Source of the DNA: Phaeosaccion multiseriatum
Lineage: Eukaryota; Protista; Ochrophyta, other classes
Length of the DNA: 64,000 bases
Direction: 5' to 3'
Assembly (NCBI GenBank): GCA_965112735.1
Contig: OZ218965.1
Span: 1,984,001 to 2,048,000 of the forward strand
Shown here: piece after piece, positions 1 through 46,789 of the stretch
Layout of the letters: each line of letters begins with the position of its first letter
How positions within the stretch are numbered: position 1 is the stretch's first letter
Program-made: the position numbers and the translations under genes
The notes under the pieces: generated by a model
The model's database searches: none
What the model saw: only the letters and a program-made list of their open reading frames with translations
Told to the model about the DNA's origin: nothing

Positions 1-2970
1 GAGTAAGCATCGATAAGCAAGCAAGTCGAGGGAAACAAACAAGTGGAGGAGGCCACGGGTTGCTTAGGACGGAGGAAAGGAACGAGCGAGGCATAACAGT
101 GCTGTTTATTGTGGTTGGAGGCCCGGGCACACAGCATTGGGTGGTTTGTGTCATAAAACGCGCCCGTGGATACTCCGAAAGAACCATGGCATGCGGATGG
201 TGACAGAAGCAACAGATAGATTTTGGCCAGGCGGTAGGAGCGAAGCAAGCAACTGGTGGTGCCTGATACTCACATTACAGGACTGAAGGCCTTCGCAGGT
301 GGCGGACGACGAGTCCACAAAAAAGCCATACTGTGTGGCGTAGAAGAGTAGTAGGAGAGGGGGGGTGGGAAGAGCAGAGAGCAGGACAGGAGTTCGGAGG
401 GCGTAAGAGGCTTCTTGCTGCCGTGCAGGGCAGGCACGAGCAAGGCACCGAAGGAGCGACTTGGAGACGAGCAGCGGCAGGACAGGGGGGAGGGAGACAC
501 GGACATCATGGCACTGACTGGGCACGCCGCGAGAGCGGAATTGCTTGTTTTGCTGCCACTCGTCCTCACCATACAGGAATAAGGGCCTTCGCAGGAAGCT
601 GTCGAGGCCTCATTAAGCATGATGTACTTGTATGGTGCAGAGAGTAGCAGAGGGGGGGTGGGAAGAGCGGAGAGCAGGGCGGCAGTGAGAGTGCGTAACT
701 AAGGCTCGGAAGGGAAGAAGGCACTGGAGTAGCGAGAAGGGGCGAGCAGGAGCAGGTAGCGAGCATTGCCACAGCAAGGCGAAATCAAGACAAGACGGCA
801 AAATAGAGGACCACGGCTTCGAGGTTAGGCCTGCACATGGGGCGGAGATGTGGTCGAGCACTGCGCCACCCCGGGCCACAGCATCGACCGAGAAGAGCAC
901 GGCATGAGCAGCCAGCACAGGCAGCAAGAGGGAGACACAGACTTGCTGGGCACGCTGCGATGGGACTTATTGTCGTGCCCTGTCTGCCCCATTCTCACCG
1001 GACAGGAAAAGGTGCCTTCGCAGGAAGCCGAGGCCGTTTCCCACAAACTGGTAGTCTGTGTGGTGTAGAGAGTAGGAGAGGGTCGGTGGGAAGAGCTGAG
1101 AGAGATTGACTTCAGAGGGGTGAAAGGCTTGCTTGCAGCCAGGCAACAAGGCACTAGAGGAGCGAGAGAGACGAGAAGGAGGTGCGTAGCGCATCGGCAT
1201 TGCCACAGCCAGCAGGGCGAAATCAAGACAAGACGGCAACACAAGAGGAGGGGATAGAGCGAGAGATACCATGGCTGGCTTCGAGGTTAGGCAAGCGCAT
1301 GGGGCGGAGCAGGCAGGAGGGGACAAGCAAGCAAGGACAGGAAGTGGGCGAGCAGCCACTGCGCCAGCCACCACGGGCCATAGCCTCGGCCGAGAAGAGC
1401 GCTGCATGGGCAGCACAGGCAGCACGAGGGAGACACAGACTTGCTTGCTGGGCACGCCGCGATGGGACTTGTTATTGTCGTGTCCTGTCTGTCCCATCCT
1501 CACCTCACACGCCAGCTTAGCAATACAGGAAGCAGAGGTAGTGCCCCGAAAAACGGCGCCCTGTGGAAGAGCGGAGAGCAGGACGCGGAGGTTCAGAGGG
1601 TGTAAGAGGCTTGCTTGCAGGGAACAAGGCGCTGGAGCGCTGACCGAGAAGACAACAGACGAAGGCTTGGAGGCATATGGGGGGCAAGGAAGAGGGGAGG
1701 GAGGCAGTCGAGGAGCGCTGCAACGCCATTACTTCCTCCAACTTGTTGACCTCACAGGCATCTCCCACACCCGACAATCAACCAGCCACCCAACGAGAGC
1801 AAGCCTAGAGCATTCGCATCCGCAGTTCCTTTGGGCGTCTGCCCACACAGTGACATGTAGGAGTACTCACCCTGCAAGACGACTCTTCCGTACATTGGAC
1901 GGCACAGTCCTTCACGAGTCGACGGAGACGCGGTGGGGAGGAGGGGGTCGGAGCGAAGCAGCAGTCCATATACGCGTACGCACAAACGCGACCAAAAGAG
2001 AGGCATGGAGAGGAGAGAGAAGGGACGTCAGTGAGCAGGGCTCTGAGGAAGACGCCAGGAGTTAAAGAGCCTCCCCACCGGTTGTAGGTAGCTCGGGTTT
2101 GATATGCAGACAGTCCGGCACCTGTCGTGCCCTCCCCGTCCTCTTCCTCCCTTCCCACCCCTTCTCCTCCTCCCATTCCTCCAAGGGCGGGTGACAGTGG
2201 CAACACTCACCACGAATGTGACGTACTGACAGGTGGCAAGCAAGTCACGGGCAATGAGCCACACAGCCAGTCCAGCCGGCAGGATGAGGCGGAGCAGGCC
2301 CAGTAAGGTGGCAGAAGATGCAGGCCATTACCGACGACAGCCCCAGGGGTGGAGGGAAGCAAGGAAGCACGGCAGGGCGGGGAAGAGCAGCGCAAGGCCA
2401 CCAGGAGGGAGTGCCAGAGAAGGCTGGGTAGGTAAGCACTTGACACAAGATATAGCCAGGAAACAACACAGCCCCTTCAAACAGGAGAGTGGGCCAGCCG
2501 TTAGCTACCGCCCCGGTTGGGGGCGGGGGGGAGCGACAAGGTCCCGACTCAAGGGGACGAGGTGAAAGAATGATGAGCGGGTACCCACCTTGCAGGTCAC
2601 TCCGGTGCAGATGATGGGATTGGCTTCATCAGGAGAAGCGCAGGTGCAGGTACCGGCAGTGCCGGAAGTCAAGTCGTACCCTCCCTCTCCGGTGCAGACA
2701 TCGTCCAACACTGGTCCACGGCAATCAAATGCCATAGGAAAAGGAAAGAAGTTGTTTCGGGACAGGAGGAGGAGGAGGACGAGGAGGAGGAGGTTGTGAT
2801 GGTGGTGGTGGATGAGGAGGAGGAGGAGTTGAGGCCGAAGGAGAAACGTGGGTCCGCTTAGACTGTACTCCTTCTCTACAACCTTCGCTGATGGGGGTGG
2901 ACTGCAACTCCTGCACCAACAAGCCCACCACGAGCAGCAGTGGGCGGAGACGCGAAGAAGAGGACTTCAT
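1..2970 (-). CDS. Paralogue (copy A) of the secreted Cys-rich micro-exon protein; 3' end lies beyond the left window edge; may be a pseudogene
   Basis: ATG at 2970 gives MKSSSSRLRPLLLVVGLL (signal-like). AG/GT-bounded exons: 2710-2589, 2225-2211 (YVTFV), 1909-1871, 1560-1504, 1055-999, 626-570, 330-274. 1-2550 is near-identical to 9430-11890. The original exon-1 donor is deleted; only a weak GTTGTA donor at 2882 would keep the frame. Confidence 0.65.
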
Positions 2971-4015: not shown

Positions 4016-6250
4016 ATGAAAGCAATAGGAGGGAAGAGGAGAGAGAGCAAGATATCTGTGCGGGTGGAAGCGGAGAGGAGGGGAGTACACATAATGCGGG
4101 CACAATCAGAGAGACGGCAGCTGGGAAAGGGGAGTAAGAGTGGAGTGACGAGGAGATGGAATGCAACAGCTTGTAAGGCATTAGATGAAGCTGAGGCAAG
4201 CCAAGCTCGTCAGCAGCAGCTAAAGGAGGCCATAGCTGTCGCTGACGCTGGCTTAAATGAGCTAAGAAAAAAGCACGTTGGGAAGCCAGGCCGGTAGCTA
4301 CACCGCAAAAGAACGAGCACAGAAGAACGCGCTGGCAGGATCAGTGACGGAACGCCAAGGAGAAGGTAAGATTCTGATTCTACCCTCCGTCCCTTCCTCC
4401 CCCCCCCCCTCCCGCCCCCCGCACCTCCCCTTACTTCAAGCGCCTTAATCTCCTCTCCACAATTCCCCCCCCCACCCACCCCCCACCCACCCTCTTGTCT
4501 CCGACGTGCATCACCTCCAAGCGTCTCCTCCCAGGGGAGGTGGAGAAGGTGCAGGAGCTGACTCCAAAGGTTCAGCAGGATCTGCTCAAGGCGGCTGGAG
4601 GGGCGCGCGCTAATCGCCACTCTGGTCCTGCTCACGTTCCGAAGGGAAGACTGCCTGCCGCAGGAGAGATGGACCGGCCGCCGCCAACGAACACCAGGAG
4701 GGAGAGGAAGAGGAGGAGGAAGGCCGTGAAGAAGGGCGAGAAGCGGCTGAGGTTGACGCTGTGGACCCCAAGTACCGCAGAATGACAGCGGCACAGGAGG
4801 AGTTCAACACGCAGACGAGGGACAAATGGAAGAAGGGAAAGGGCACATCATCGAAGGTGAGGATGCTATCAGCCGCGCGCCTTACACTGTGATGCTCTTC
4901 TCTCTTCTCTCCGTCGTACCTCTGCAGAATGCTTGCTCACTGCTGGCTCCACGCTCCCCTATCCTCATGGCTGACATTGTTTCAGGGCTCCCGATACTTT
5001 CATCCCTCGGATCCCCTCGCCTGCCGCGTATGGCACCCGCTCCGTCTACTTCGTCTACTTCTACTCTCCAGAGGTGGACAGCGATGTGCATGTCTGCAGA
5101 GGATGTGACAAAGGGGAAGAATACGTTGCCGTGTTCTACCTGCGGGTGGGAGGCAGCTGAGGTGGGGAAGGTTACGAGGCACGGCTACACCGAGTAGCAA
5201 GAAGGCCATCCGCATTGTGGGAGTGGAGGACCACACATACCTCATGAGCACTCGCCACTACTGCGCGTGGTGCAAAAAGGAGGCAAAGCGTGGCCCCTGA
5301 CATGCTTCTGAGACACGCCAGCCCAGAAGCAGGAAGCAGGCCGGCTGGCGCCGGCCAGAAGCAGGAAGCAGGGTCGCCTCAGAAGCATGTCAGGGGCCGA
5401 CTACGAGGAGGAGAAGAGGAGGATTTGGAAGGACAAGCAGTATACCTTCTCCGCCTACAACAGCCGCGTCACACGCCACCTCGTGGCACGATTCCCGTGG
5501 GTGGCAGCCAGTCGGGCTGCCGGCCGGCCTTCATTGTTGGGGAGGGGCTTGCACAGCAGTGAGCCAAGGGCTTGCACAGATGATCTTGCGGCATTGCTCC
5601 AGCGGCGGTAATGGCTGGCCACGGACTATCCAAGAATTTGGCGGAGCTCCGAGCAGAACAGTTTACTCGGGCGCAGATACAGTACTACGGGGCTGCGGTG
5701 TGCACAGGGAGTACGAAGTGGCCTGCCGCGGGAAGCAGCGGAGGCCAGCAGAAGGATATGAAGGACTTTTTCACAAGCGGTCGCACGGTCAATGAAGGAG
5801 GCGCGAGCAGCGGCGCGGATGGAGCTCAAAGAGACCCATAGTCGTTGAGCCCCTCACGACGCAGCTGTACGGGGCGTACACGCCCGGCCATGGGCTCGTG
5901 CGGCGGATCTTCAAGGAGCTCACGCAGATGAGGTACGCTGACATGTGCAACTGGCGAGCGTCCACGATAGGAGGCACCACGGTGGCCACTGATCACAGCA
6001 TGAAAATTGCCAAGGATGCTGAAGAAGAGGGCGCACGAGCAGGAACCAGTCAGCTCACGGCGTTTTCAAACGCAGTCAATGCCCCTCTGAGTTGTGGGAT
6101 TGTCCAGTCTTTCGGAGTAGTGCTTGGTGACGGACTGGTCGACGGCACGGGAGCTCATGGATCAGCATGGTGGCAGCATATAAGAGGGATCACCGATTTG
6201 TTGGAGAGTTTGTGCGCTATCGAGAATGTGGGCGATTATATGCATATTAT
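4016..6250 (+). pseudogene. Frameshifted remnant of a DUF6729-type putative DNA transposase gene
   Basis: Broken frames give LPCSTCG...AIRIVGVEDHTYLMSTRHYCAWC...FSAYNSRVTRHLVARFPW...LAELRAEQFTRAQIQYY...VATDHSMKIAK. From memory this resembles DUF6729 plus the DHxxK motif of transposon-associated proteins. Several stops and frameshifts. Confidence 0.4.
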
Positions 6251-6713
6251 TTAGGATTTGGGACCGGGAAAGTGCGTTTTCCTCAAATCGCAGACACCCT
6301 ATATATTATTTATTCTTTAAAATTGAAATTAATTGAAATTAAAGTATGCCGTAAAAAGGCTATTGCAGACCCCCCCCCCTTGAGGCAACTCCAAGGCCCC
6401 CCGTACCTACACTCTTTGGTATTGAATATGTGAATGGAAGCGTGCCTCGATTGGGATCCATCCATCATACAGAATGAAGGAAAGAAAAAGAAAAAAGACA
6501 TCGCCAGCACAACAGCCCGTACAAGCCAAGAGCTGTGGCCTCCCCCCAACGCCCAACTAAAAAAACCAAAAGCAAAGAAGAAAAAACCCAAACAGAAGGA
6601 AGCGGCCATCGTACAATAAGAAGCATGCCGGAGCGAGGCTATCAGCATGGAGAAAGACTGCAACCTAGCTACACGCACCAGAGAAGATGAATCGAGGAGT
6701 GCCGGTAGCACGC

Positions 6714-9700
6714 TCAGCGACCACCGGACTGCGCGGCCTCCACACTGCAGCTGCGGAGGGACGCGCCCGTGACCACGAAGCTTCCCTCCACTGCCGCGCC
6801 CTTAATGCCGAATGCGCTTGGGAGGAGAATATCGTCCACCACAGCGCTGACGCTGCACGTCGTAGGGCCCGTGCTATCGACGGCACACGCCTGCTTGGCC
6901 AGGAGTGGGTAGGCGCCTCCGTCTTGCTGTATGTACACCTCCACAACTCGCTCCTCGCCGGCCTCAATGGCGGCGACTGTATACGTGATCGTGTACACCT
7001 GGCCGGCGACGGGGATGTCCAAGGCCTGGTACAGCTGCATGTGCCAATCCCTTTCCGCCGCCGTCTGGACGCTGTACAGGGCTCCGCTACTCGTGGCGGT
7101 AATGCTGCCCTCGAGGGAGGTGTCGGCGGTCCTGACGTATGTGTTCCAAGATTCCAGGCCGGCGTCGAAGTCCGGGTTGGACAAAAGGTTGGCGGTGCTG
7201 GAGGGGCAGCTCAGGGGGGGCTCCGGCGGAGTCACACACAGCGCGGCCCCCGTCAGAGTGTACTTCCCCCCCTCCTCTCTGGCGGCTTCGTGCTCGAAGC
7301 CGAACTTGATCGGCACGTTCACGTCGTCAAGCACCGCGGAAGCCGTACACACCGTTGTCGAGCCGAACCCCCCGGGCTCACCAACGGAGCACTTTGTCCT
7401 GCCGAACACGTCATACAGGCCTCCGTTCTGCTGGATGTACGCCCGCCCGGCGCCTCCCTCGCCAGCCGCGGCCTCCATCACAAAGGTCAGAGTATACACT
7501 TGCCCGGAGACGCGCACGGCGACGGTCTGGAAGATTTGCATGTGCCAGTCGCTCTGGCCAGGCGTCTCGATGTCGAACAAGGCTCCGCTGCCCGCGTCCG
7601 TGATGCTCCCCGCGAGGGAGGTGTCGGTCTTCTTGACGAAGATTGACCAACGCTCCAGGCCGCCGGCGAAGCCCGGGTTACGCAAAAGGTTCACGCTGCC
7701 AGCGGGGCAGATCGGAACCGGCAGGACGGGCGGGACTGTGGGGTCTGTGGTTGGGACTGTGGACAGCGAAGATTGTCCATACATCCAGGGACATCGGGGG
7801 GGGGGGGCAAAAAAACAAAGAGGTATGAGGGCGGAAGGGGGGCATGTTAAGCGGCGAAGGTAGGGACCAGCGCAAGGGAATAAGGCGGAAGCAAGCAAGC
7901 TCCGCGATTACAACTGATCAAGCAGCAGCGCCGCCAGCGCTCACACACTCACCGACGAAAGTGTAATCGGGGGCTCGTGTGTCGAGCGCCTCGTCCAGCA
8001 CGACATCCGAGTGTCGGGTGAGGAGCACGGTGGTGCCCACGATGGCGGCCCGGTTGCCCCTGTTCTTAATGCGGATGCTGCTCATTTGGAGGCCAGGGTT
8101 CAGGTTGAACGTGAACGTCAGCGACCCTCCATTCCCGCTGACACCGCAGAAAGAGGAGTCGTCCCCGTCGTCGCACTGGTCAGGCGTCTGCGAGGCCGGC
8201 GGTGGGCCGCTGGCTATGATGGAGGCGGGAGGGATCTTGGCGCCGTCTTGGTCGAAGGCCGTGACTTCCCCCAGCTGCAGCGACTTGTCGCTCGGGGATG
8301 CGATGACCAGCACATACTGGGCTGTTGTTGCAAAGAAAAACACCCACAAGCGGAAACAAGAGGCAGAGATGAGGCGAGGGGGGCGGTGACGAAACACACG
8401 CAAAACGTAAGAAGAGGCCGTGCGCTGGACGCTGGTGCGTGTGGACAGATGGACGAAGCAAGCAAGGCCCAGGAAGTCCAACCAATCCTTGCTTCAGGTG
8501 CTTTCCGCGCCTTTATGCCAGGCAGCGGCCAGGCAGCAGAGGCAGCGTCTAGCTAAGCCCGTGGGGGACGTCCACAACCTCTACAACCTCCCTCAGTCAT
8601 GCACTGACAAGTTTGGGCGCTTGCGTGCTCTTACCTCCACACTTGATGGTGTCAGCGGGGCTATTGGTGTTGCAAGCAAGGCCGAAGGGGGCGCCGGGGG
8701 GTGCAGAGGCAGGGAAGGAGTGAACGGCAGGCAAGCGAGAATGAGGAGGCGACACACAAGGGGGCGGGCGGGATGACGAAAGAGAGCCAGTGCGAAGGAG
8801 TGGGCAATAGGTGCTCGTGCGGTGGGAGGCACAGGCAGGGCCGTGAGATAAAGGGCCATGATGGCCTGGTTACGACGTGCACACCCCGCATAGTCAGCTA
8901 GCTCTACCTGCGACAACGTACCAGTACGGACCGCCACAGCATGATGCTGGACTGATGTTCTGTTGGTCAAGGCCGAGGGAAGAGCGTGGCAGAGAGACGG
9001 ACGGTTACAATGGTATACTCACTTAGCCCCCACCCTGCCTCTCGTCTGCCATGACAGCCCCACCCACCTGGATAGAATCGCAGGCCTCGCTAGTCTCGCA
9101 CGTTACCGAGGCCTGCTGGTACAAGAAAGGACGCTGCAGGGTGCAAAGGTTGGGGGGGGGGGGGGGGGCACGGCGAGAGCAATGCAGCAGCCAGTGGAAA
9201 GCATTGCTTTTGAGGAGGGTGGCATCAAGTGCTGAAAGCGCTGCCTGCATCATGGACCAGTAGTGTAATCGACTTACAGTGCACGAACGTCGCCCGCTGC
9301 ATGTCACGTGAGCGGTGCACTCATCTGCTTCCCCGTAAGAGCTGCTGGAGGTGGCACTCAGCGTGGTAGGGCAATCCTCCACCATATCACAAACTTCCAC
9401 TCCCTGTGGAGCGAAAAGCAGTGAGTGACAGAGTAAGCAAGCAAGTCGAGGGAAACAAACAAGTGGAGCAGGCCACGGGTTGCTTAGGACGGAGGAAAGG
9501 AACGAGCGAGGCATAACAGTGCTGTTTATGGTGGTTGGAGGCCCGGGCACACAGCATTGGGTGGTTTGTGTCATAGAACGCGCCCGCGGATACCACTCCG
9601 AAAGAACTGAGAAAGGAGACACCATGGCCAGCGGATGGTGACAGAAGCAACAGACAGATTTTGGCCAGGCGGTGAGAGCGAAGCAACTGGTGGTGCCTGA

Positions 9701-12700
9701 TACTCACATCACAGGACTGAAGGCCTTCGCAGGTGGCGGACGACGAGTCCACAAAAAAGCCAGCCTGTGTGGTGTAGAAGAGTAGGAGGGGGGGGTGGGA
9801 AGAGCAGAGAGCAGGACAGGAGGTCGGAGGGCGTAAGAGGCTTGCTGCCGTGCAGGGCAGGCACGAGCAAGGCACCGGAGGAGCGACTTGGAGACGAGCA
9901 GCGGCAGGACAGGGGGGAGGGAGACACGGACATCATGGGCACGCCACAAACTTGTTTTGCTGCCGCTCGTCCTCACCGAACAGGAAAGAGTGCCTTTGCA
10001 GGAAGCTGTCGAGGCGTTATTAAGTATGATGTACTTGTGTGCGTGGTGCAGAGAGTAGCAGAGGGGGGGTGGGAAGAGCGGAGAGCAGGACACCAGCAGT
10101 GAGAGTGCGTAACTAAGGCTCGGAAGGGAAGAAGGCACTGGAGTAGCGAGAAGGGGCGAGCAGGAGCAGGTAGCGAGCATTGCCACAGCAAGGCGAAATC
10201 AAGACAAGACGGCAACATAGAGGACCACGGCTTCGAGGTTAGGCCTGCACATGGCTGGGGCGGACATGTGGTCGGGCACTGCGCCGCCACGGGCCATAGC
10301 ATCGGCCGAGAAGAGCACGGCATGAGCAGCACAGGCAGCAAGAGGGAGACACAGACTTGCTTGCTGGGCACGCCGCGATGGGACTTGTTGTCGTGTCCTG
10401 TCTGCCCCATACTCACCGAACAGGAATCAGGGCCTTCGCAGGACGCCGAGGCCGTTTCCGCCAAACTGGTATCCTGTGTGGTGTAGAGAGTAGGAGAGGG
10501 TCGGTGGGAAGAGCTGAGAGAGATTGACTTCAGAGGGCGTAAAAGGCACTCTTGCCACAGCCAGCCAGCAGGGCGAAATCAAGACAAGACGGCAACACAA
10601 GAGGAGGGGATAGAGCTAGAGCATATACCACGGCTTCGAGGTTAGGCAAGCACATGGGGCGGAGCAGGAGGGGACAAGCAAGGACAGGAAGTGGGCGAGC
10701 AGCCACTGCGCCACCACGGGCCATAGCCTCGGCCGAGAAGAGCGCTGCATGGGCAGCACAGGCAGCACGAGGGAGACACAGACTTGCTTGCTGGGCACGC
10801 CGCGATGGGACTTGTTTTTGTCGTGTCCTGTCTGTCCCATCCTCACCTCACACGCCAGGAAAGCAATACAGGAAGCAGAGGTAGTGCCCCGAAAAACGGC
10901 GCCCTGTGGAAGAGCGGAGAGCAGGACGCGGAGGTTCAGAGGGCGTAAGAGGCTTGCTTGCAGGGAACAAGGCGCTGGAGCGCTGACCGAGAAGACAACA
11001 GACGAAGGCTTGGAGGCATATGGGGGGCAAGGAAGAGGGGAGGGAGGCAGTCGAGGAGCGCTGCAACGCCATTGCTTCCTCCAACTTGTTGACCTCACAA
11101 GCATCTCCCACACCCGACAATCAACCAGCCACCCAACGAGAGCAAGCCTAGAGCATTCGCATCCGCAGTTCCTTGGGGCGTCTGCCCACACGGTGACATG
11201 TAGGAGTGCTCACCGCGCAAGACGACTCTTCCGTACATTGGACGGCACAGTCCTTCACGAGTCGATGGAGATGCGGTGGGGAGGAGGGGGTCGGAGCGAA
11301 GCAGCAGTCCATGTGCGCATACGCACAAACGCGACCAAAAGAGAGGCATGGAGAGGAGAGAGAAGGGACGTCAGTGAGCAGGGCTCTGAGGAAGACGCCA
11401 GGAGTTAAAGAGCCTCCCCACCGGTTGTAGGTAGCTCGGGTCTGAAAGGAGACAGTCCGGCACCTGTTCGTGCGCTCCCCGTCCTCTTCCTCCCCCCCAC
11501 CCCCCTCCTACTCCCATTCCACCAAGGGCGAGTGACAGTGGCAACACTCACCACGAATGTGACGCTCTGACAGGCGGCAAGTCACGGGCAATGAGCCGCA
11601 CAGCCAGTCCCGCCGGCAGGGTGAGGCGGAGCAGGCCCAGTAAGATGGCAGCAGATGCAGGCCATTACCGACGACAGCCCCAGGGGTGGAGGGAAGCAAG
11701 GAAGCACGGCAGGGCAGGGAAGAGCAGCGCAAGGCCACCAGGAGGGAGTGCCAGAGAAGTCTGGGTAGGTAAGCACTTGACACAACATAGGCAGGAAACA
11801 ATACAGCCCCCTTCAAACAGGAGAGTGGACCAGCCGTTAGCTACCGCCCCGGTTGGGGGCGGGGGGGAGCGACAAGGTCCCGACTCAAGGGGACGAGGTG
11901 AAAGAATGATGAGCGAGTACCCACCTGGCAGGTCACTCCGGTGCAGATGATGGGATTGGCTTCATCAGGAGAAGCGCAGGTGCAGGTACCGGCAGTGGTG
12001 GGAGGCGAGTCGTACCCTCCCTCGCCCGTGCAGAGATCGGCCCACACAGGGTCAGGACCGGGAGTTGAGGGGGACGTGGGGGAGGGGGTCACGGGGGAGG
12101 CTGGTGGTAGTGGTGGTGGTGGGGGAAGAGGTGGTGGTGGTGGTGGTGGTGGTGGTGGTGGTGGTGGTGGTGGTGGTGGAGGTGGTGGTGGAGGAGGCGG
12201 AGGAGGAGGAGGAGGAGGAGGAGGAGGAGGAGGAGGAGGAGGCGGAGGCGGAGGAGGAGGAGGAGGAGGAGGAGGAGGAGGAGGAGGAGGAGGAGGAGGA
12301 GGAGGAGGAGGAGGAGGAGGAGGAGGAGGAGGAGGAGGAGGAGGAGGAGGAGGAGGAGGAGGAGGAGGAGGAGGAGGAGGAGGAGGAGGAGGAGGAGGAG
12401 GAGGAGGAGGAGGAGGAGGAGGAGGAGGAGGAGGAGGAGGAGGAGGAGGAGGAGGAGGAGGAGGAGGAGGAGGAGGAGGAGGAGGAGGAGGAGGAGGAGG
12501 AGGAGGAGGAGGAGGAGGAGGAGGAGGAGGAGGAGGAGGAGGAGGAGGAGGAGGAGGAGGAGGAGGAGGAGGAGGAGGAGGAGGAGGAGGAGGAGGAGGA
12601 GGAGGAGGAGGAGGAGGAGGAGGAGGAGGAGGAGGAGGAGGAGGAGGAGGAGGAGGAGGAGGAGGAGGAGGAGGAGGAGGAGGAGGAGGAGGAGGAGGAG

Positions 12701-15700
12701 GAGGAGGAGGAGGAGGAGGAGGAGGAGGAGGAGGAGGAGGAGGAGGAGGAGGAGGAGGAGGAGGAGGAGGAGGAGGAGGAGGAGGAGGAGGAGGAGGAGG
12801 AGGAGGAGGAGGAGGAGGAGGAGGAGGAGGAGGAGGAGGAGGAGGAGGAGGAGGAGGAGCGAGCAGCGCACACACAGACGCTCTTACCTTCACACAGATT
12901 GAACGGAAACTCCGATGGAACCAAGACGCCTCTGCTATAGAAGTCGTTGCTATTGGTGTTGCACAGTTGCACGGGGGGAGGGGGCACGCGTGACGATGAA
13001 GTACGAAGGGAGGGGGGTTCACTATCACTGTCGGCGGGTCACTGTCACTAACGCGTTTGTAGAGTGCAGTAGCGGCCTGGCACGGCCTAGCTACGCGGGG
13101 CAGGTCGAATCAAAAGTCTACGGTCTGAACTGCCTGGGACAAAAACTTACCATAACTGCCCTTCGCAGCATGATGTTGCACTAGCCGTCTGTTGGTCAAG
13201 GTCAAAGTGGAGTGGCAGAGCGAGTGGCAGAGAGCGTAGGAGACAGGTTGGCTGGTTAAGGGTATTGGAAACACTTGTTGCCCCACGACAGCCCTGTCCC
13301 ACCCACCTCGAGAAGCTTGCACGGATTGTCGTATATCGGACTGTCGAAGCCCCTCTCGCACGTCGCGGAGGACCTTCCGTACAAATCGACCTCCTGTATA
13401 GGGTGGGCCAGGCCAGCCAGGGCCGAAGACGGGGCGAGTCGAGGCATAAGCGACACGACACGCAGAGCGCCAACCAATAACAGTGTCAATAACAGCAGCC
13501 AACTACACGGTCGGGAAGGGCATTCTTCTGGTGCTGCTAGCAAAGGGGTGCGTCACCCCCGCTGTCCCCTCTCTCTTGCTCGGTGCAGCGAACCGACTTA
13601 CATTGCACGAAAATGGGTCCCTGCATGTCAAGTGAGCGGTGCACTCCGGGTCCTCCCCTCCGGTCGCAGTTATACAAGCTTGAGCGTTCTGTGGAGCGAC
13701 GCACAGGGAGGGACAAAGTAAGCAAGCAAGCAAGGGTGTTCAAGCCCCACCAAGAGGCTACAAACGAAAAGGGAGGAGACCACGGGTTGCTCAGGGCCGA
13801 TCAAAGAAACGAGCGAGGCATAGAGGTGATGCAGTAGTTCGAAACGAGGCCGGGGATGAGTAGTAGCTAAGGCCAGGCAAAGGGAGGAACAAGGAAATAA
13901 CACCATAGGGCCAGAGGAGGTATGGCCAGCCAGCGGATTGTGTTAGAAGCAAGAGGCAGATTTTGGCCAGGCGGTGAGAGCGAAACAACTGGCTGGTGCT
14001 GACTGATACTCACGGTACAGCCTGCAAACCCACTGCAGGTCACGGTCGACGAGCCCCCAAAAAAGGCACGCTGTGTGATGAAGAGAGGACGAAGGCGTTG
14101 GGGAGAGCAGAGGCAGGGCACGACAGGAGGTCGGTCGGGGGACGTAAGAGGCTAGCTGCCGTGCAGGGCGGGCACGAGCAAGGCACAGGAGGAGCGACTT
14201 GGAGACGAGTAGCGGCAGGACAGGGGGGAGGGAGACACGGACATCATGGCTGGGCACGCCGCGAGCGCGAGAGCGAATATGCTTGTTGTGCTCTCTCTTG
14301 TCCTCACCTGACAGGAGGCAAGGTCTTCGCAGGAAACTGTCGAGTCCTCAAATGTGGCATCCTGTGTGGTGTAGAGAGTAGCAAAGGGCGGGTCAGGAGG
14401 AGGTAGCGCATCGGCCTCGCGCCCTCCCCTAGAGGAGCTGACCAAGAACACAAACGAAGGCTTGGAGGCGTATGGGGGGCAAGGAAGAGCAGGGGAGGGA
14501 GGCAGTCGAGGAGCGCTGCAACGCCATTGCTTTCTCCAACTTGCCCCCACCACAGATCATCTCCCACACCCGACAACCAACCAGCCAACCACCGAGAGTG
14601 AGCCCTGTAAGAGGCGGTACAAGAGACTGGGAGAATACCAGAGGCACAGGCATCCGCAGTTCGTTCGTGCGCCTCCTGCCCACACGATGTGTTGTAGACT
14701 AGGTAGGGCTCACCGAACAAGACTGCGCATCTGTACATTGGACGGCGCAGTTCTTCACGACGGGTGGGCACACGCGGTGGTGCGGTGGCGAGGAGGGTCC
14801 GAGCGAGGCAGCAGTCCACGTGCGAGCACGCACAAACGCGACCAAAGAGAGGAGGGATGGAGAGGAGAGAGAAGGGCGATAGTGAGCAGGACTTTGTGGA
14901 CTACCGCCAGTAAGCAAAGAGCCCCCCCACTGGCCGCTCTCGTTCCCGCTAGCACAAGTAGGGGTGTCAAAGTAGCGGCAAGGGGTGACGCTGGGGGTGG
15001 CGACCCGGCAGGGCTTGCCTGTTGGACTTACAGCCGCGCAGGGCGAGACAGACACACCCCTTAATGCGCCCTTCCTCCCCTCCTCCTCCCTTTCCTCCGA
15101 GGGCAACACTCACCACGAAAGTGACGTCCTGACAGGCGGTAAGTCACGGGCAATGAGCCGCACAGCCAGTCCAGCCGGCAGGATGAGGCGGAGCAGGCCC
15201 AGTAAGATGGCAGCACATGCAGGCCATTACCGACGACAGCCCCAGGGGTGGAGGGAAGCAAGGAAGCACGGCAGGGCGGGAAGAGCAGCGCAAGGCCACC
15301 ATGGGGGAGGGTAGGTAAGCGCTTGACACAGATTGGCAGGAAACAACACAATCCCCTTCAAACAGGAGAGTGGACCAGCCGTTAGCTACAGCCCCGGTTG
15401 GGGGCGGGGGGGGCGACAAGAAGGTCCCCCCGACTCAAGGGGACGAGGTGAAAGAATGATGAGCGAGTACCCACCTCGCAGGTCACTCCGGTGCAGATGA
15501 TGGGATTGGCTTCATCAGGAGAAGCGCAGGTGCAGGTACCAGCAGTGCCGGAAGTCGAGTCATACCCTCCCTCTCCGGTGCAGACGACATCGTCCAACAC
15601 TGGTGGTCCACGGCAATCAAATGCCATAGAAAAAGGAAAGAACAAGTTGTTTCGGGACAGGAAGAGGAGGAGGACGAGGAGGAGGAGGTTGTGATGGTGG

Positions 15701-16013
15701 TGGTGAACGAGGAGGAGGAGTGGAGGCCGAAGGAGAAACGTGGGTCCGCTTAGGCTGTCCTCCTTCACTACGGGCAGCTTGGTGCTTCCTTCGCTGATGG
15801 GGGTGGACTGGCTGGGGGTACGGGAGAGGGCCAGGCTGGCAGCCATGCTGCACTATACGGAAGAAGAACAGCCCAGCAGGAGCCCGCAAATTAGCTGCTC
15901 GCTCGCTCGCTCTCACCTTGGCCATGCACGCTTGGGATGAGCTCCTGTCCGATCAACTGCACCAAGCCCACCACGAGCAGCAGTGGGCGGAGACGCGCAG
16001 AAGAGGACTTCAT
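6714..16013 (-). CDS. Secreted multidomain protein, ~928 aa, 23 exons: signal peptide, two Cys-rich micro-exon repeat modules (CxxxxxC, 18-19 aa), discoidin/galactose-binding-like domain, 2x CBM4/9-like domains
   Basis: All junctions GT-AG and phase-consistent: 16013-15917, 15599-15475, 15128-15114, 14752-14714, 14361-14308, 14070-14014, 13688-13602, 13393-13307, 13188-13151, 12949-12888, 12100-11925, 11566-11552, 11252-11214, 10903-10847, 10473-10417, 10033-9977, 9764-9708, 9403-9278, 9133-9068, 8959-8922, 8660-8635, 8321-7953, 7756-6714 (sum 2787 nt, divisible by 3). The last exon has NLLRNPGF..W and NLLSNPDF..W CBM starts. Confidence 0.75.
12103..12858. repeat. (GGT)n-(GGA)n microsatellite, ~750 bp, inside intron 12887-12101 of the micro-exon gene
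   Basis: Near-pure GGA run ~12190-12858. On the minus strand there is a GTAAGA donor at 12887 and no AG until 12102. Confidence 0.95.
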
Positions 16014-20235: not shown

Positions 20236-23200
20236 TCAGTCACTTTTACCACTAGGGCAGGCAGCATTCACTCCGTCACAATACCAGTCCCCTTCAGGAA
20301 GCGTAGAGAGGGGAGGGGTCAGGCAGTACGTGTGAAACTCCTCATCGCAGCCGTCACATAGCAACATTTTGTCGTGGTCAACATCTTTCTGACAGACTAG
20401 ACATGCAGTGGCTTCGCTGGAGCTAGAGTCTGCTGCTTTTGCCGTGCCACGAGACAAAGCCCCATAACTCTCGGGCTTGTTTACCGTGCGCCCACGTGAG
20501 GACATCGCCCCCACCACCTTTCCGATGATGTTCTTGCGCAGTGTTCTCAGGTTCAGCGCCTCCTGCTCGCCATCACTGCTATCGTCCTCAGACATGTCCT
20601 CTCCCATGTGCACGCTTGGGTCGGGGGGGGCGTATCCCATCGCCTTGGCCACCTCTTGGCCCTCCGCCTCTCTGTTGACAATCTGCTTGCACTCCTCGTG
20701 CTGCTCCTCCGTGATGGCAAACCTCCGAAGCCTTCTCTGCGCGCACACCCCTCCTGAAGCTGCATGTGAGCCTTCGATGTACATTGCTTCGTGGTAGCGG
20801 GGCAATGCGCCATAAATGGCAGCACAAGACACAGAAGCCTCTTTCCCGCCGTCGACTTCGTAGACGACTGCTGCAGCCCCATCCCCGTCCTGGGACTCGT
20901 CGGTAGAGTCCTGTTCAGCGACGTGAAAGTATGAAACACCAGGCTTTGCCGGAACCACCTTCTGCTTGGAGCCTCGTCCCTTCTTCGAGACGATCACCTC
21001 CTTCCGAAGATCGACGCGAAGCTGTGCAAGAAAAAAGCTCTCCTCCGACCCCTTGTCTGCCCTGACTATCACAACGTCATTTGCCCTGTAGAGAATGCGA
21101 GTTCGGACGGATTCACCGGTCTTCCGTCCTTTCTGTCCGCGCTTCCTCGCTCCCGAGCTCTCATGCAAGCGCGACAGGTATCCACTCGGGTCGTTGCTTT
21201 GCGCAGAGTTGGGAGCAAACGCCACCGAACGCGGGGCCGCTCCAACATTGTACTTCCTCTTGTTGGTTACACGCTGCTGCGGAACCTTCCTAAGACGAGC
21301 CGCCGCATTGCGAAGCGTCTGCGTGTCCTTCTTGCGCTGCTTCCGTTGCCCTTCGTCAAGCTTCTCCGCTACCCTTGGTCGCTTCAACACGGGTGAAGCC
21401 ACCAATCTGCTCTCGTTTTGCTCCAGCTGGTATCCCGCCCTGAGCTTTCGACCGCTGCTGTTGACGCTGCTTGTGCAGTAGGCAAAGCCCATGCTGGGGT
21501 TGGCCTTCTTCGCAGCCTCAAGCATCACAAGGCCCCTTCTTCGGGCATACTCAAGAGCGTCTGGAACATCCTGGCGGCCTTCCCTTTGCTTCGTGAAGAA
21601 AGTCTCAACATTGAGGGTCAAAACGCTCCTCATCTGCATCTTCTCCACGATGCCGCGAGGCACTCCCTGCTGACGGAAATGAGCGAGGAAGCATCAAGCA
21701 AGGAGCGAACAGCGAAGCCGTGAGACGAAAGGGCAAGGCTGATTTCCAAACGCACGCGCCCACGGACACGGACATTTTTACTCACGCACTCACGCACACA
21801 CACGCACACAGCCATGGGGAGCACCCCCCTTCTCACCTCTGCAAGCATCCGATGTAGCATCCGAGGTAGTGCCTGCAGGCTCGCCTTGATAGCACCTCGA
21901 ACTTCGCGTGATGGCATTCCTTCAGGGCCCTGGAGAGAGACCAGGGATTTGCCTGTGGCAGCTGATATCGCTTTCCCCATGTGACTGAGAGCCAAGTCGA
22001 CCACATGAAGCTTGGCAATGCTCTCCTCCATCGTGCGTGCGTTGTTTTGCATGTCTTTGCCATTCTCATCCAAGTCTTCGCCCTGGAGCTGATACGCCTC
22101 ACTCAACATCCGTTGTAGTGGGATGAGGTGCTGGGCGTAGACGTAGCAGTCCGAGATCATTCGAATGCACTGGTTTCCAGTGTCGGACAAGAAGAAAGCG
22201 TTGTACACGAAGCAGCCGAACGTAGGTCTGAACAAAGGTACTTTCGATGCCGTACCGCTGGCAGTGCTCTCTCCGGGTTCTGTGTTTCCCTGTCCGCCCA
22301 TCAGCACGGATGATCCCTTCCAGCTTAGCACCCCACTGTCACGACGAAGGAGAACCTTGACAAGCGCATGCAAACCTTCATCTAGCATGAGGATGACGAT
22401 CATATCTTCATCATCGTATGCACCGGGTGGGGCCAACGTGAGTCCACAAGGCTGAGTCCCCACGTGAGACTTCACGCACGTGAGGTGTGCGCGCCTTGGC
22501 TTCTCAACAGTACCATCTTCCTCGTCATCAGTCAGAGCCATGAGTGTATCTCCGTCATTGCCACTGCCACCCTCTGGTCCTCCGGCACGTTCCACATTGC
22601 CCTCCCAGACAAAAAGCGAGCTGTCGGCGATGCAGGCAACGCAGTCATGCGAGAGTGCTGTGAGGCCCGCAGGTCCCTTGGGTAGGTCACACAGCTTCTC
22701 GCTCACAGGTGCAAAAGGGTTGCCAGCATCAAATGAGAGCCGGTGTAGTGCTCCCCCCCCGCCAGGTTCCTCTTGGGTGACAAAGAGGTCGAACGCGCGC
22801 TCAGAGGACACGGCAAGCGCAATGGCAACGGGGCAACGGATGCCCTCCTCTTCTCTCTCCTCGAGGACATTCTCCTCAGAAGTGCAACGCTCCTGGATCC
22901 GACGGACCAAGGGCACTGCCTTCAAATTCAAATGCCGTTGCTGAGTCTGTCTCCCCCGACCACGCGCTGCTACATGCCCGTCCGGTTGCTGGTCGTCGTC
23001 ATCATCATCGTCGCCCTCCTCCGCCGCCGCGCGGGGTCCCCTGTTTCCTGGAAGAGCGGCCAGCACATGCACCACCCAAATCTGATTCGCTCCACTGTCA
23101 CACATGTACACGTAGTCGCCAACCACGACGAGAGACCCAAGACTCTGGAAGCAGTCGTCTCGCAGAACAACCTCTGTGGTACAAGGCACATGATGGGCCT

Positions 23201-25057
23201 TGAGCATGCGCAGATGCCTGCCTGAACGATCGGCGTTGAAGATCATGCCAGAGCCATGATGGTAGCCCATACCAGTCGGCTTCTGAGTCTGCGAGGCCAT
23301 GTTCTGATGCCAGAAACCCCACGGCTCCGGGCACACGGTCACCCCCACGAGAGCACGGCGCTTCTCCCGCTCCTCCTCTGAGAGTAGAGCCAACTGCAGA
23401 GACGCCGTCGTAACAGCGATTGCGCTCTCCACTGAGAAAGGATCCTTGTTTTCAATGGCGTCAAGGCCAACATTGGCTTGTACTGCTTCACTTCGAGCCG
23501 GGTCCAGATCGTGGAATCTGGCGCGAAGAGTTCGCAGTCCGACTAGCCAGCCCTGGCAGACGACCCACCAATTGAATGTCGTAGCACGAACACACTTTAC
23601 AAGGTGAGCCCCGTCAGGCAGTGCCTCATACCACCCCAGGGGGTCGTCCTCTCCGAGGGTTCTTGCCGCCATTTTCCGAATGAAGGCAAGCTGTGCGCCA
23701 TTACAGTCTGTTGAGATGCACAATGGTCGGAGACTCTTGCACACGAGCCCTTTCCTCTTGCACCTCGAGCAGACTCTGCTGGAGAACTGAGTCGCGCAAA
23801 CGCACTCACTTTCACCGCAAGGACCCTCCCCTCCGGTGGGACAAGCTTGGTGGCAATCACACGCCTCGCCCATCTCCACCCACGAGGGGTTCTCCCCCGT
23901 CAGAATCCGCTGCCAGAAAAGCTCGAGACAAGGGATGCAAACACGCAGCGCCTTCATGATTTCGGTCACGCTCGCGGCAACACTTTTGTAGTCACCCCCT
24001 GCGGTGTGAAGCTGAAAACCGATGGAGCCCGTGTATGCCCCTTTCAGATCCATCATCATAACTTCCATCATCTCGGAACCCAGCTTAGGTGCGTCCTCGT
24101 CTCGCAGCTGGAACAGAACGAGTAGCGATAAGGGAGGGTTGACAGGAGGCGAAGCAAAGGCGGGGCTGCAGCGTGAGCGAGCGAGCGAGGAGGCGTGATT
24201 AAGATTGACGATGGATCAACAGTGATTCTGCCCCGAAAGATCAGTGGGAAGGAGGGGACGCCACGCACCTGAGCATCAGACTTTTCCAGTATTGCCTTCG
24301 CCTGCTCCAGTGTTGTATTTCCAAACTGATGTGCATTGCCCCAATTGGTTTGGCTGGTTGTATCAGTATGATGGCCCTTGGCAATGACGAAGCCATCCAT
24401 TTGGACAGTCACGGGAACCACAATCTTCTCGTTGCCTTTGTCGCCAAGAGTGTAGGCTTGGTCGGCACAGAAGCGGGCGAAGACATTGACGACGTTGATA
24501 ATGTCTTCGACTTGCAGACCGTACCTCTTGATTAGGCCAGGCCTGCGCCTAATGAGTGCTCTCGGATGAAAGCCGCCTGTGTTCGCCCTGCGGAAGTAGT
24601 CCTTCATGGCCTGGTCCCTGGAGACGTTGGGGCCACGAACCTTCTTTCTGCGGGGTGCCCCATAGGAGAGCATGGAGCATGCTGAACCAAATACGTTCTG
24701 CTGGGTCTCATTAAACTGTCGCAGCGTCTCGTAGCCATTGAGCTGCTTGCTCGCGGCCACAGTCTGACGCCTGGACCAAAGGCCGCTGTTCATGACCCAA
24801 CGATGCACCGTTTGATACATGAAGTGACTCCGAGTAAAGTGCCCTCGATCAAGATGGAATTGGATCGCAAAGGGAACAATGTCGACATCGTTTACGTCCC
24901 GGGTAAGCTCTACACGCCCGCTGTCCGCGTCTTCCGTCACAGCCACCCGCCCATGGTCTTCTTCTGTCGCGGACGAGCCCGCGGCGCCCATCGCCTTTGT
25001 TTGTGGCCAAATGTGAAACGGCAGAATCTTTATTGGCTTATAGCTGGCTGGGCCCAT
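20236..25057 (-). CDS. Putative P-element-like DDE transposase (~1480-1500 aa) with Cys-rich insert, NHL-like beta-propeller, BAH-like domain and PHD finger
   Basis: Three ORFs joined in frame by introns 24268-24108 and 21836-21667. Motifs VQMDG (D ~24396), ISTDCNG (D ~23707), LPDGAHLVKCVRA (like P-type DxPHLxKxxRN) and SVLTLNVETFF (E ~21605, like QDxLExFF). Propeller blades (KPTGMGY..IFNADRS, VYMCDSGANQI, FFLSDTGNQCIR). C-terminal CLVC..LLCDGCDEEFHTYCLTPPL..PEGDWYC. Start is 25057 or 24991. Confidence 0.75.
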
Positions 25058-32823: not shown

Positions 32824-35800
32824 ATGTTTCGAGGACCTGCTGGGCTGAGCTCCCCCATTCGAGTGGGTAGACCTTTCGAGGGCTTTGCACCCGGCTCTGC
32901 CCCAGCAGCGGGGGCGAGCTCATCACGATCATCGTCAGTTAGAGGACGGAGGAGAGACACGTCGCCAGAGAGGCTTATAGCACAGAACAACTCTTTGCCT
33001 CTGCTCTTTCGGAAGCATGACTTCCGGCCCCTCTTCGACGCGAGCGCAAGCACCAGAACCAAGGCCTACCGGGCGGCCTTGCGCTCTGCAGCACCCTCCT
33101 CTGCGTCGTCGCCGTCGCTCTTCCAGGCCTCTTTCCCCTTGGACATGTACGAAGCCGCAGGAGCCTCGCAGTCACGGCCATCCACAGGGTACGGGGGCCG
33201 TGCGAAGGGCCAAGGGAACAGAGGAGGAGGCGTAGGGCCGACCATGGGCGTAAATGCCATGTTTCCGGATGCACACAGCCGGGCAGCGTCTGGAATCAGA
33301 AGGGACGCCAGAGGAGGACGGGGAAAGGATGGGGCAGGGCCGAACGAAGGGGGTGACTTTCAAGTGAATGGCAGCAAGTACCCGGAGACGGGTCAGCGGC
33401 CCATGACAAGCGTGGGGAGGGCCAGATACGAACCTGGACAGCAACGGGAGCAGGAGCAGGAGCAACAGCAGCAGGAGGAGGAGGAGGAAGAGGAGGAGGG
33501 CAGGGGGGAGGAAGAGGATGATGATGATGAGAAGTGGGGCTATGCCATCTCGCAGGAAGAAAACAGGGAGGAGTACAGGGAAAAGGAGCAGGAAGAGGGG
33601 GAGGAGGGTCAAGCATCCTACAACGACGATGACCTCGCCTCTACTCTCTCCGTAGGCTATGGGGAGCGCCCGCACACGAGCCCGACGCAGGAGCTACACA
33701 TGATGAGCAGCGACTACCGCCGCGGCCACAGCACCAGCACCAACAGTCTGTACGCTCCTCCTGCGGCTCCGAAGCCAAAGCCCTGGGAGCCGCAGGACAG
33801 CGCGAGGGGGGGCATGGGAACCGTACTGCGCTTCCTCGCCTACACGGTCGAGAACAACGAGTACAGCTTCGATGGCTCGGATAGGACGCGAGTGAGGGAG
33901 CTCATGATAATGTACTACCTCAAGGACGGAGAGATAAGCATCGTTGAGCCAAGGAAGGACAGCACGGGGCTTCTGTGGGCGAGCACGATGAAAGGGTGAG
34001 TCACATGGGGTCGTGGGGTCTTGTCACTCAGGCAAGGCAAGAAACAAAGGCAGAGAGGGAGGCCGCCGTGGGCACCGGAAGGCCAAACAAGAAACTCGGA
34101 AGGCTGCTGCTGCTTGCTTTCAAAGAGCGAGTGGGTGGGTGGGATACAGTCATGCCACAACACACAGCCTTACAAAGCGCACTAGCGCTGCTGCTCCAGT
34201 GCTGCCGAGCGACCAAGCCCCCCCCTGGCATCCTCAATTGCTTCCCTTCCTCTTCTTCTTCTTCTTTCTCTACTCTCCCTCTCTCTCCCCTGCTGCTTGC
34301 TTCCTCTTCCTTCCCTACCCCACCCGGGCCTGTCTCCTCTGCCTATCACCCCCCCACCCCACCACAGCGGGCTGGGCTCTCTCCGACGCGGAAAGGTGCC
34401 CAGAGCGGACGGCAGCGGTACCTTCTACGAGCTGAAGGACCTCACAGTCGGCTCGCGCCTGCTTATCTACGGTAGAGATATTACCGTGGTGGATGCGGAC
34501 GAGTACACAAGGACCAAGTGCGCAAGAATGGGTATCCATCTCGAGGAGGGGATACCCATTCCGCAGGTGAGTGGATAGCTATGTGTATTGAGTATTCGTG
34601 AGGGGGTTGAGTTGGGTCTACGCGCCGCACCTGGGGCTAGCTACAGTGCCGCTTGAGCAAAGAATGCACGCACACACGCGCATGCACTCACTCACTTACG
34701 CACACACGCACACACACACGCACGCACGGACACACACACAGGATGAGTTCAGTGCTGCGAGAGGAGATGCCTCCACCCATGGGGCGGTGCTGGGAGGGGG
34801 GTGGGGTGGAGGGGGAGGCGGAGGAGGACAAGTCCAACGACCCGACACCCGGTACTTCCGTAAGACCAATTTTATGACTCAGTACGCGGAGTCCCTGGGG
34901 GGCAAGCCGCCGCCGGACAACGGCAAGGCACGGCAGTTCCTGGCCCACCCCAGCAACTCCCCGGGGGGCGTCCTGCGCTTCTACGCCGTGTGGGACGACA
35001 GACAGCGTTTGTTTGGGGACGTGCATCGCCTTGTGCTGCTCTATTTCCTCTCGGACGACTCCATGGAGCTGCTAGAGAGGCATGAGAGGAACTCCGGTTA
35101 CGACAGGTGCGTGCGTGTGTGCGTGTGGGTATGTGCGGGCATGTGTGTGTGTGCGTGCGTGTGTGTGGGTGGGTGGGTGCGTGCGTGGGTGCGTTTGTGT
35201 GTGCGTGGGGGCATGTGCGAGCGTGTGTGCGTGATGGGTGTATGGGGGCGTGGGGACGTGGGGACGTGGGTGCAGGCGTGCGTCGGTGCTTGATCCGCTG
35301 AGCGGCGTACAAGTTGGAAATGGAGGACAATGGCGGTAGAAGGGCCGTTTTTTCAGGGGTGGCAGGGCCGTCTTTCAGAGACTGTCCTCTGTTCTCGTAG
35401 ACCGGAATATGAATATGCTGCCTTCCCCTCTCTTCTCTCCGACTTCACACAAAAGGAAAGGCCAAACATCTCATCTCGTGAGTCTATCTTTCAATCTCTA
35501 CCTCTCTATCTCTCCACCTACCCCGTGACGTCATCATGGCCCTACGCACAGATGGCCGAAGCTGTTGAGGCGTATGAAGGTCCCTCGCGACGCCTACTCT
35601 ACAGATGACGACGCCGCCACCGTCCAGACGAGCCTCTTTCCTGAGGACGACGGAGCGGAGCCCTCTCCCTTCAACCCTCACTCCATCAAGTCGGCTTACA
35701 GGGGCCATGGGCAGCCGCACTGGGCCGAGCAGCGTCAGGAGGCCGAGGAGGAGGGAGGCACGGTGGTGAGTGGCTTTGGAGTCTATGGAGGATTTGCCGG

Positions 35801-44826: not shown

Positions 44827-44858
<32 letters not shown>

Positions 44859-44863
44859 GCAAG

Positions 44864-44942
<79 letters not shown>

Positions 44943-45806: not shown

Positions 45807-45840
<34 letters not shown>

Positions 45841-46575: not shown

Positions 46576-46618
<43 letters not shown>

Positions 46619-46728
46619 TCCGTCGGCAGCGCCAACAGGACCTCATGCGGCAGGAACACATGCTGCAGCAGCAGCAGTTGGCGGCACAGCAGGAGGCCGC
46701 CCTCGCCAAGCAACGACAGCAGGAACAA

Positions 46729-46789
<61 letters not shown>

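Follow-up and report, generated by a model that had tools for sequence, protein, structure and literature searches.

A 23-exon micro-exon gene of Phaeosaccion multiseriatum predicted to encode a secreted cysteine-repeat protein with carbohydrate-binding modules

The subject of this study was a gene of 23 exons, many of them very short, on the minus strand of a 64,000-nucleotide (nt) stretch of DNA from Phaeosaccion multiseriatum (assembly GCA_965112735.1, contig OZ218965.1, positions 1,984,001 to 2,048,000), referred to here as the window. On balance we consider it probable that the algal gene is functional and transcribed, that it encodes a secreted modular protein of 928 amino acids (aa) in which arrays of a two-cysteine repeat are fused to carbohydrate-binding modules (CBMs) of the CBM4/9 type, and that the protein acts in extracellular recognition or adhesion. 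The gene is transcribed, its spliced reading frame is open throughout, and comparison with a tandem paralogue shows that the repeat exons have changed faster than the introns between them.

Exon architecture and transcript evidence

Exon borders were set by the flanking AG and GT on the reverse complement, then the exons were joined by script. This independent rebuild from the sequence placed the ATG at 16013 and the end of the TGA at 6714, which generated a coding sequence of 2787 nt and 928 aa with zero internal stops. All 22 introns are GT..AG and range from 108 to 787 nt. Donors were GTGAG (12/22), GTAAG (5/22), GTGGG (4/22) and GTACG (1/22), while acceptors were CAG (17/22), AAG (3/22) and TAG (2/22). 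The features are listed below in order of transcription, followed by the paralogue.

Exon 1, 15917..16013, minus: 97 nt, ending in phase 1; carries the start codon and a signal-peptide-like segment, the most hydrophobic 19-aa window of the whole protein beginning at residue 11
Exon 2, 15475..15599, minus: 125 nt; six-cysteine head of unit 1, 90% nt identity with exon 11
Exon 3, 15114..15128, minus: 15-nt micro-exon (DVTFV), first third of a split repeat; model only, outside RNA coverage
Exon 4, 14714..14752, minus: 39 nt; remainder of the split repeat
Exon 5, 14308..14361, minus: 54 nt; single two-cysteine repeat
Exon 6, 14014..14070, minus: 57 nt; single two-cysteine repeat
Exon 7, 13602..13688, minus: 87 nt; four-cysteine segment with C-x5-C spacing
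Exon 8, 13307..13393, minus: 87 nt; repeat with a long loop separating its two cysteines
Exon 9, 13151..13188, minus: 38 nt; unit 1 tail containing CC
Exon 10, 12888..12949, minus: 62 nt, closing unit 1 in phase 1; acceptor context tgcaacaccaatag identical at exon 21
Intron 10, 12101..12887, minus: 787 nt; nearly all (GGA)n on the plus strand, (TCC)n on the coding strand; between units 1 and 2
Exon 11, 11925..12100, minus: 176 nt; Pro/Ser/Thr linker and six-cysteine head of unit 2
Exon 12, 11552..11566, minus: 15-nt micro-exon (SVTFV)
Exon 13, 11214..11252, minus: 39 nt
Exon 14, 10847..10903, minus: 57 nt; single two-cysteine repeat
Exon 15, 10417..10473, minus: 57 nt; single two-cysteine repeat; 10/57 nt differ from the paralogue, giving 5 amino-acid changes
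Exon 16, 9977..10033, minus: 57 nt; single two-cysteine repeat; 9/57 nt differ from the paralogue, giving 6 amino-acid changes
Exon 17, 9708..9764, minus: 57 nt; single two-cysteine repeat
Exon 18, 9278..9403, minus: 126 nt; cysteine-rich segment, 3' border matched by RNA joint 9133>9278
Exon 19, 9068..9133, minus: 66 nt; final repeat of unit 2, 5' border matched by RNA joint 9133>9278
Exon 20, 8922..8959, minus: 38 nt
Exon 21, 8635..8660, minus: 26 nt, closing unit 2 in phase 1; model only, outside RNA coverage
Exon 22, 7953..8321, minus: 369 nt; orphan beta-rich domain, 3' border matched by RNA joint 7756>7953
Exon 23, 6714..7756, minus: 1043 nt; a Pro/Thr linker is followed by two beta-sandwich modules of CBM4/9 type (about 7697-7230 and 7199-6744) and the stop codon; 5' border RNA-confirmed, RNA depth 78-268
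Tandem paralogue, 1..2970, minus: comprises exon 1, a single head exon and a repeat array like that of unit 2; cut off by the start of the window

Fourteen of the 23 exons (3-8 and 12-19), which together make up 813/2787 nt of the coding sequence, are phase 0-0 with a length that is a multiple of three. Exons 5, 6 and 14-17 (54-57 nt, phase 0-0) each encode one repeat. The repeat that is split into a 15-nt and a 39-nt exon is present twice, as exons 3+4 and 12+13, and a third time in the paralogue; the micro-exon borders, tcag upstream and gtgagtgt downstream, are kept in unit 1, unit 2 and the paralogue. Phase 1 is the end phase of exons 1, 10 and 21 and the phase accepted by exons 2, 11 and 22, so whole units are 1-1 modules and repeats are 0-0 exons. 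It follows from the sequence that gain, loss or skipping of a repeat cassette or a whole unit would preserve the reading frame. When a profile of nine repeat exons was run against the six frames of the window, 10 matches had E <1e-6, all 10 of them on modelled repeat exons of the gene or the paralogue, and the next match had E 0.3. A preliminary description of this region, made by reading the sequence, had proposed a stop-free spliced protein of ~928 aa from 23 exons, one repeat per phase-0 core exon and a 15-nt plus 39-nt split repeat. The rebuild recovered all of these, and the six peptides quoted in that description correspond to exons 5, 6, 14, 15, 16 and 17.

Four sequencing runs from one sample (X1, X4, X5 and X6) were mapped over 6100-12090. 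X1, X4 and X5 covered exons and introns evenly, lacked the two joints named below and are DNA-like. The depth of X6 was 78-393 across exon 23 and the 3' end, ~4 farther upstream, and ~0 over most introns. Because its coverage was high at the 3' end and exon 23 and zero over most introns, we infer that X6 is a 3'-biased RNA run. Two contig joints were unique to X6. The first, 7756>7953, skips 196 nt and is intron 22, while the second, 9133>9278, skips 144 nt and is intron 18; both are CT..AC on the plus strand and exact to the base. The gene is therefore transcribed, and spliced where RNA depth reaches. Junction reads were among the checks proposed in the preliminary description; contig joints were obtained for introns 18 and 22, the other 20 introns being without usable RNA depth. 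The micro-exons and the junction across intron 10 are predicted from sequence logic and from conservation among three copies.

Downstream of the stop codon, at 6235-6600, DNA-like and RNA-like contigs break with long loose ends (at 6235, 6250, 6302 and 6593) and RNA depth is above that of exon 23. This is probably a dispersed repeat within or beside the 3' untranslated region, which makes the 3' end of the transcript uncertain.

About 250 triplets of a (GGA)n/(TCC)n microsatellite, one end of which has short GGT and GGC variants, fill intron 10 (12101-12887), exactly where the duplicated units join. A coding role as a poly-Pro or poly-Ser linker was considered and rejected. Read-through from exon 10 gives a poly-Ser frame that is open for ~270 codons and then hits a stop at about 12055, and the poly-Pro frame is unreachable because AG is absent from the coding strand of the tract. 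The first AG beyond the tract is in the correct phase for exon 11, and shorter TCC-rich tracts occupy the equivalent introns before exon 2 and before the head exon of the paralogue. For these reasons the tract was treated as an expanded intronic microsatellite, its length being that of the assembly.

Domains of the predicted protein

The predicted protein consists of a signal peptide, unit 1 (exons 2-10), a Pro/Ser/Thr linker, unit 2 (exons 11-21), an orphan beta-rich domain (exon 22) and two CBM4/9-type modules (exon 23). Hydropathy over the whole protein revealed one strongly hydrophobic window, residues 8-30, and no later membrane-like stretch. A signal-like N-terminal segment with no second hydrophobic stretch is what would be expected of the secreted protein proposed in the preliminary description.

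Units 1 and 2 (residues 33-218 and 239-458) contain 11-12% cysteine and 22-26% Ser+Thr, compared with 2% cysteine in the C-terminal half. Each unit has a six-cysteine head exon, a split repeat, 2 or 4 standard repeats, two longer cysteine-rich exons and a small tail containing CC. The repeat is 18-19 aa long with the consensus xxxFxxxSSASCEGxxSCx. Its two invariant cysteines are six residues apart, and cysteine spacing through both arrays alternates between 6 and 13. From this pattern we infer a triangular solenoid, in which every 18-19 residues would form three short strands and each coil would have one C-x5-C bridge. Out-of-frame echoes of the repeat core ('TSASCS') lie just upstream of exon 14 (10918-10935) and of its paralogous exon (1575-1592); they may be remnants of cassette duplication.

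The preliminary description did not recognise the repeat family, nor did the searches performed here. With three spliced pieces of the array, no Pfam family rose above threshold. The best match, DUF7640 (PF24646) with exons 12-17, scored 15.3 bits (E 0.024) against a gathering cutoff of 28.1 bits, and membership was rejected on that ground, the two other pieces giving no DUF7640 match; TIL followed with E 0.85. A 19-column repeat profile had no match among PDB sequences up to E 10. The head module of exon 11 reached a best score of 0.65 in a language-model feature atlas, which is a meaningless level. A literature search found no paper describing this two-cysteine repeat family and none on DUF7640.

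Exon 23 was more informative. Searched with the whole protein, Pfam CBM_4_9 (PF02018, galactose-binding-domain-like clan) scored 41.5 bits against a cutoff of 25.9, in two stretches, and the first module also matched DUF4627 (31 bits, cutoff 24.9). Among 1.84 billion representative sequences 195 distant relatives were identified, the best with E 4e-24 and 32% identity; the 40/195 that were inspected are low-cysteine, bacterial-type proteins. No relative in that library exceeded 39% identity, so the genome's own protein and its close orthologues are absent from it. A structural model made from an alignment with 25 relatives had a predicted local distance difference test (pLDDT) score of 80.7 and consists of two all-beta modules, each a predicted beta-sandwich. 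Its fold matched the CBM22 tandem of Xyn10C (4xup, E 1e-10) and CBM4 1gui (template modelling (TM) score 0.81 by target, root-mean-square deviation 2.2). Against the AlphaFold DB it matched CBM-cenC, licheninase and laminarinase modules, and the exon 23 family profile matched the CBM4 of laminarinase 16A with E 3.5e-28. The carbohydrate-binding modules that the preliminary description placed at the C-terminus are thus supported by the Pfam score, the model confidence and the 1gui match, with glycan binding itself a prediction.

Exon 22 encodes a beta-rich domain of 122 aa. Language-model features placed it at 0.95-0.96 to F5_F8_type_C clusters, the sole pointer in that direction. There was no Pfam match at E up to 1 (including F5/8 type C, PF00754), no PDB sequence match and no homologue, and a single-sequence model (pLDDT 61) had no PDB fold match. 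The domain is possibly F5/8 type C (discoidin)-like.

Duplication, divergence and the proposed role

Introns of the two units pair with one another: intron 2 with 11 (96%), 3 with 12, 4 with 13, 5 with 16 (89%) and 6 with 17. The pairing identifies units 1 and 2 as a tandem duplication. Intron 14 pairs with intron 15, and the two have 3' ends in common with introns 13 and 16, so exons 14-15 were added by cassette duplication. Taken together, the pairings show an array enlarged by tandem duplication, both of exon-plus-intron cassettes and of a whole unit.

The tandem paralogue begins at 2970 with the same promoter and exon 1 (94%), followed by a unit-2-like body (88.8-94.3%), and is therefore a one-unit version of the gene. 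Eight of its exons (492 nt) remain open. In its exon 1 (2883-2970) a deletion relative to this gene removes the usual GTGAG donor and fuses exon 1 to former intron sequence; a weaker in-phase donor (gttgta) keeps the frame open through the eight exons. This copy may be impaired, or its first junction may be a new one. Silent spare copies of repeat exons were sought in introns and on the other strand with the repeat profile in the six frames of the window, and none was found.

The gene was compared with its paralogue over exons 12-17 (282 nt) and introns 11-16 (1917 nt). The exons were 89.7% identical (29/282 changes) and the introns 95.7% (82/1917). The 29 exon changes comprise 27 nonsynonymous and 2 synonymous differences, which corresponds to a nonsynonymous divergence (dN) of 0.138, a synonymous divergence (dS) of 0.030 and a dN/dS of about 4.6; intron divergence was 0.043. 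Nonsynonymous sites differ from introns with p = 4e-6 (Fisher), and dN exceeds dS with a one-sided p of about 0.02 by hand calculation. Changes fall at repeat positions 1, 5-6, 13, 15-16 and 19, while both copies retain all cysteines, Phe/Leu at position 4 and the run of Ser/Thr. The older duplication has a like trend, units 1 and 2 being 70.7% identical in exons and 82.2% in introns. We take the comparison to show that replacement of the residues around the conserved Cys/Ser scaffold outran the neutral rate. The pattern, as judged from one paralogue pair, is that of diversifying selection acting on the surface of a conserved scaffold. It also bears out the suggestion that the family is variable, since the repeat exons outpace the introns almost wholly by amino-acid changes.

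In the role we favour, the C-terminal modules would hold the protein on a polysaccharide, for which the nearest precedent is a ligand of the beta-glucan type. The repeat arrays, braced by disulfides, would offer a second, variable partner a binding surface that evolves rapidly. With glycan anchoring and a fast-evolving repeat surface, the protein would serve in extracellular recognition or adhesion.

The protein could instead be a structural glycoprotein of the extracellular matrix or cell wall, with the cysteine repeats as a rigid spacer, the CBMs cross-linking wall polysaccharide, no specific second ligand, and amino-acid turnover that reflects weak constraint. The Pro/Ser/Thr linkers, the Ser+Thr content of the units, the several predicted glycan-binding modules and the absence of any receptor or signalling domain in the protein all agree with such a function. 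Weak constraint, however, caps dN/dS at 1 and exon divergence at the intron level. Here dN is ~3x the intron divergence, dN/dS is 4.6 and the scaffold is kept, and we regard the structural explanation as unlikely.

It is also conceivable, and in our opinion quite improbable, that the locus yields two products or mainly shorter ones, with the 928-aa form rare or absent. Unit 1 could end as a poly-Ser tail in the (TCC)n tract, or a unit could be skipped (exon 1 to 11, or exon 10 to 22). The open read-through from donor 10 would permit the former and the phase 1 borders of all units the latter, the paralogue is itself a one-unit gene, and RNA does not reach intron 10 or the unit 1 part. Against shorter products stand the lack of a second signal-peptide exon or promoter copy ahead of exon 11, the strong GTAAGAG donor at exon 10, the phase of the first AG after the tract, and the TCC-rich tracts in the equivalent introns before exon 2 and the head exon of the paralogue. 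A decaying or untranslated duplicate whose transcript is noise would fit the low RNA depth upstream of exon 23 and an intronic contig in X6, but is hardly credible given 23 open exons, 22/22 intact splice-site pairs, every cysteine kept between copies and synonymous divergence not above the intron level.

Several points weigh against a functional secreted recognition protein of 928 aa. RNA confirms only 2/22 introns, so far as splicing is concerned, and the 15-nt and 26-nt exons and the splice over the 787-nt (TCC)n intron are models. X6 was classed as RNA by its coverage alone, the kind of run not being on record. One X6 contig (10683-10829) lies wholly in intron 14 at depth 4, the same low level as the spliced contigs, which indicates that some unspliced RNA or DNA carry-over is present in X6; it carries a GCCA insertion at 10709 that is also present in two DNA-like runs. 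Exon 22 is without a verified family, and the solenoid fold is read from the sequence pattern of the array. The proposed ligand, localisation and isoforms are predictions from sequence and modelled structure. The dN/dS value comes from 29 substitutions in a single pair of paralogues, and other family members could be an alternative source of the clustered changes, through patchy gene conversion that mimics point substitution. Possible damage to the first donor of the paralogue also counts here.

Elsewhere in the window are neighbour genes with very long single exons, at 43006-47232, 35565-37202 and 49519-51855, all on the plus strand. These three comprise an EDC4/Ge-1-like decapping enhancer with a 1409-aa open frame, a DM10 plus EF-hand (Rib72/EFHC-like flagellar) protein and a class I methyltransferase. 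The genome thus mixes very long exons with micro-exon genes. Two open frames of equal length (813 aa) lie 16 kilobases apart on the minus strand, at 21633-24071 and 38046-40484. The first had no Pfam match, and in the second there was no more than a marginal methyltransferase stretch, at the beginning of the frame; both are probably copies of the same transposon. Rfam had no match in the window.

Comparison with known systems

The antifreeze protein of Tenebrio molitor is a disulfide-braced beta-solenoid with 12-aa repeats. The array described here resembles it in having short regular repeats, two cysteines six apart and strands rich in Ser/Thr/Ala. It differs in repeat length (18-19 aa) and has no sequence match, the likeness being one of sequence pattern.

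The predicted C-terminal modules share with bacterial CBM4, CBM9 and CBM22 modules, such as the CBM4 of laminarinase 16A (1gui) and the Xyn10C tandem (4xup), the CBM_4_9 match, an N-terminal NLLxNPxF..W motif, the tandem arrangement and the beta-sandwich. Identity to the bacterial modules is ~20-39%. Unlike them, the algal modules are eukaryotic and intron-bearing, are fused to cysteine-repeat arrays and are without a catalytic domain. The nearest precedents in these families bind beta-1,3 or mixed-linkage glucan, xylan or cellulose.

Schistosome micro-exon genes have exons of 3-81 bp and small products, with variation by alternative splicing documented (bioRxiv 10.1101/2023.06.21.545858; PMC4350168). 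Secreted products, many short symmetric exons and accelerated evolution are common to these genes and the algal gene. There is no sequence relation, and the schistosome exons encode no regular structural repeat. Set against that layout, the symmetric exons of the algal gene are 14/23 by number and carry 813/2787 nt of coding sequence.

The nearest published design is that of the Ectocarpus genes of the LRR-ROCO and NB-ARC-TPR types, with leucine-rich repeats (LRR) or tetratricopeptide repeats (TPR). These genes devote one phase-0 exon to each repeat, show diversifying selection on the repeats, include tandem duplicates and have been proposed to act in recognition (PMC3341825; PMC11378527). One repeat per symmetric phase-0 exon, tandem duplicates and apparent diversifying selection on the repeats (here dN/dS 4.6, one pair) are held in common. 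The Ectocarpus proteins are intracellular, with LRR (72-nt exons) or TPR arrays and GTPase or NB-ARC domains, whereas the algal protein described here is predicted to be secreted, with a 54-57-nt two-cysteine repeat and carbohydrate-binding modules. No Pfam match to an LRR or TPR repeat or to a Roc-COR or NB-ARC domain was found in the spliced protein. The Ectocarpus genes also keep spare non-coding repeat exons in introns, on both strands, in contrast to the window searched here.

Candidate immune or recognition genes with one repeat per exon have so far been described in brown algae for intracellular LRR and TPR proteins only. The present gene would extend that design to the cell surface, as a secreted family with a disulfide-braced repeat and lectin-type anchors; its cassettes multiplied in the same way, and its amino-acid changes clearly exceed the intron rate. 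Its exons and junctions are concrete material for testing whether exon cassettes are a means by which algae diversify extracellular binding proteins. Such genes will be missed by default or open-reading-frame-based gene finders because their exons are only 15-57 nt. A broader proposal, which we consider doubtful, is that the gene is one member of a genome-wide repertoire of secreted cysteine-solenoid proteins. Phase-0 cassettes and phase-1 units would be mixed in evolution and by regulated or combinatorial splicing, providing diversified, glycan-tethered extracellular recognition with interchangeable constant domains such as the CBM. If true, the LRR-exon system that has been proposed in brown algae would have its extracellular counterpart in this repertoire.

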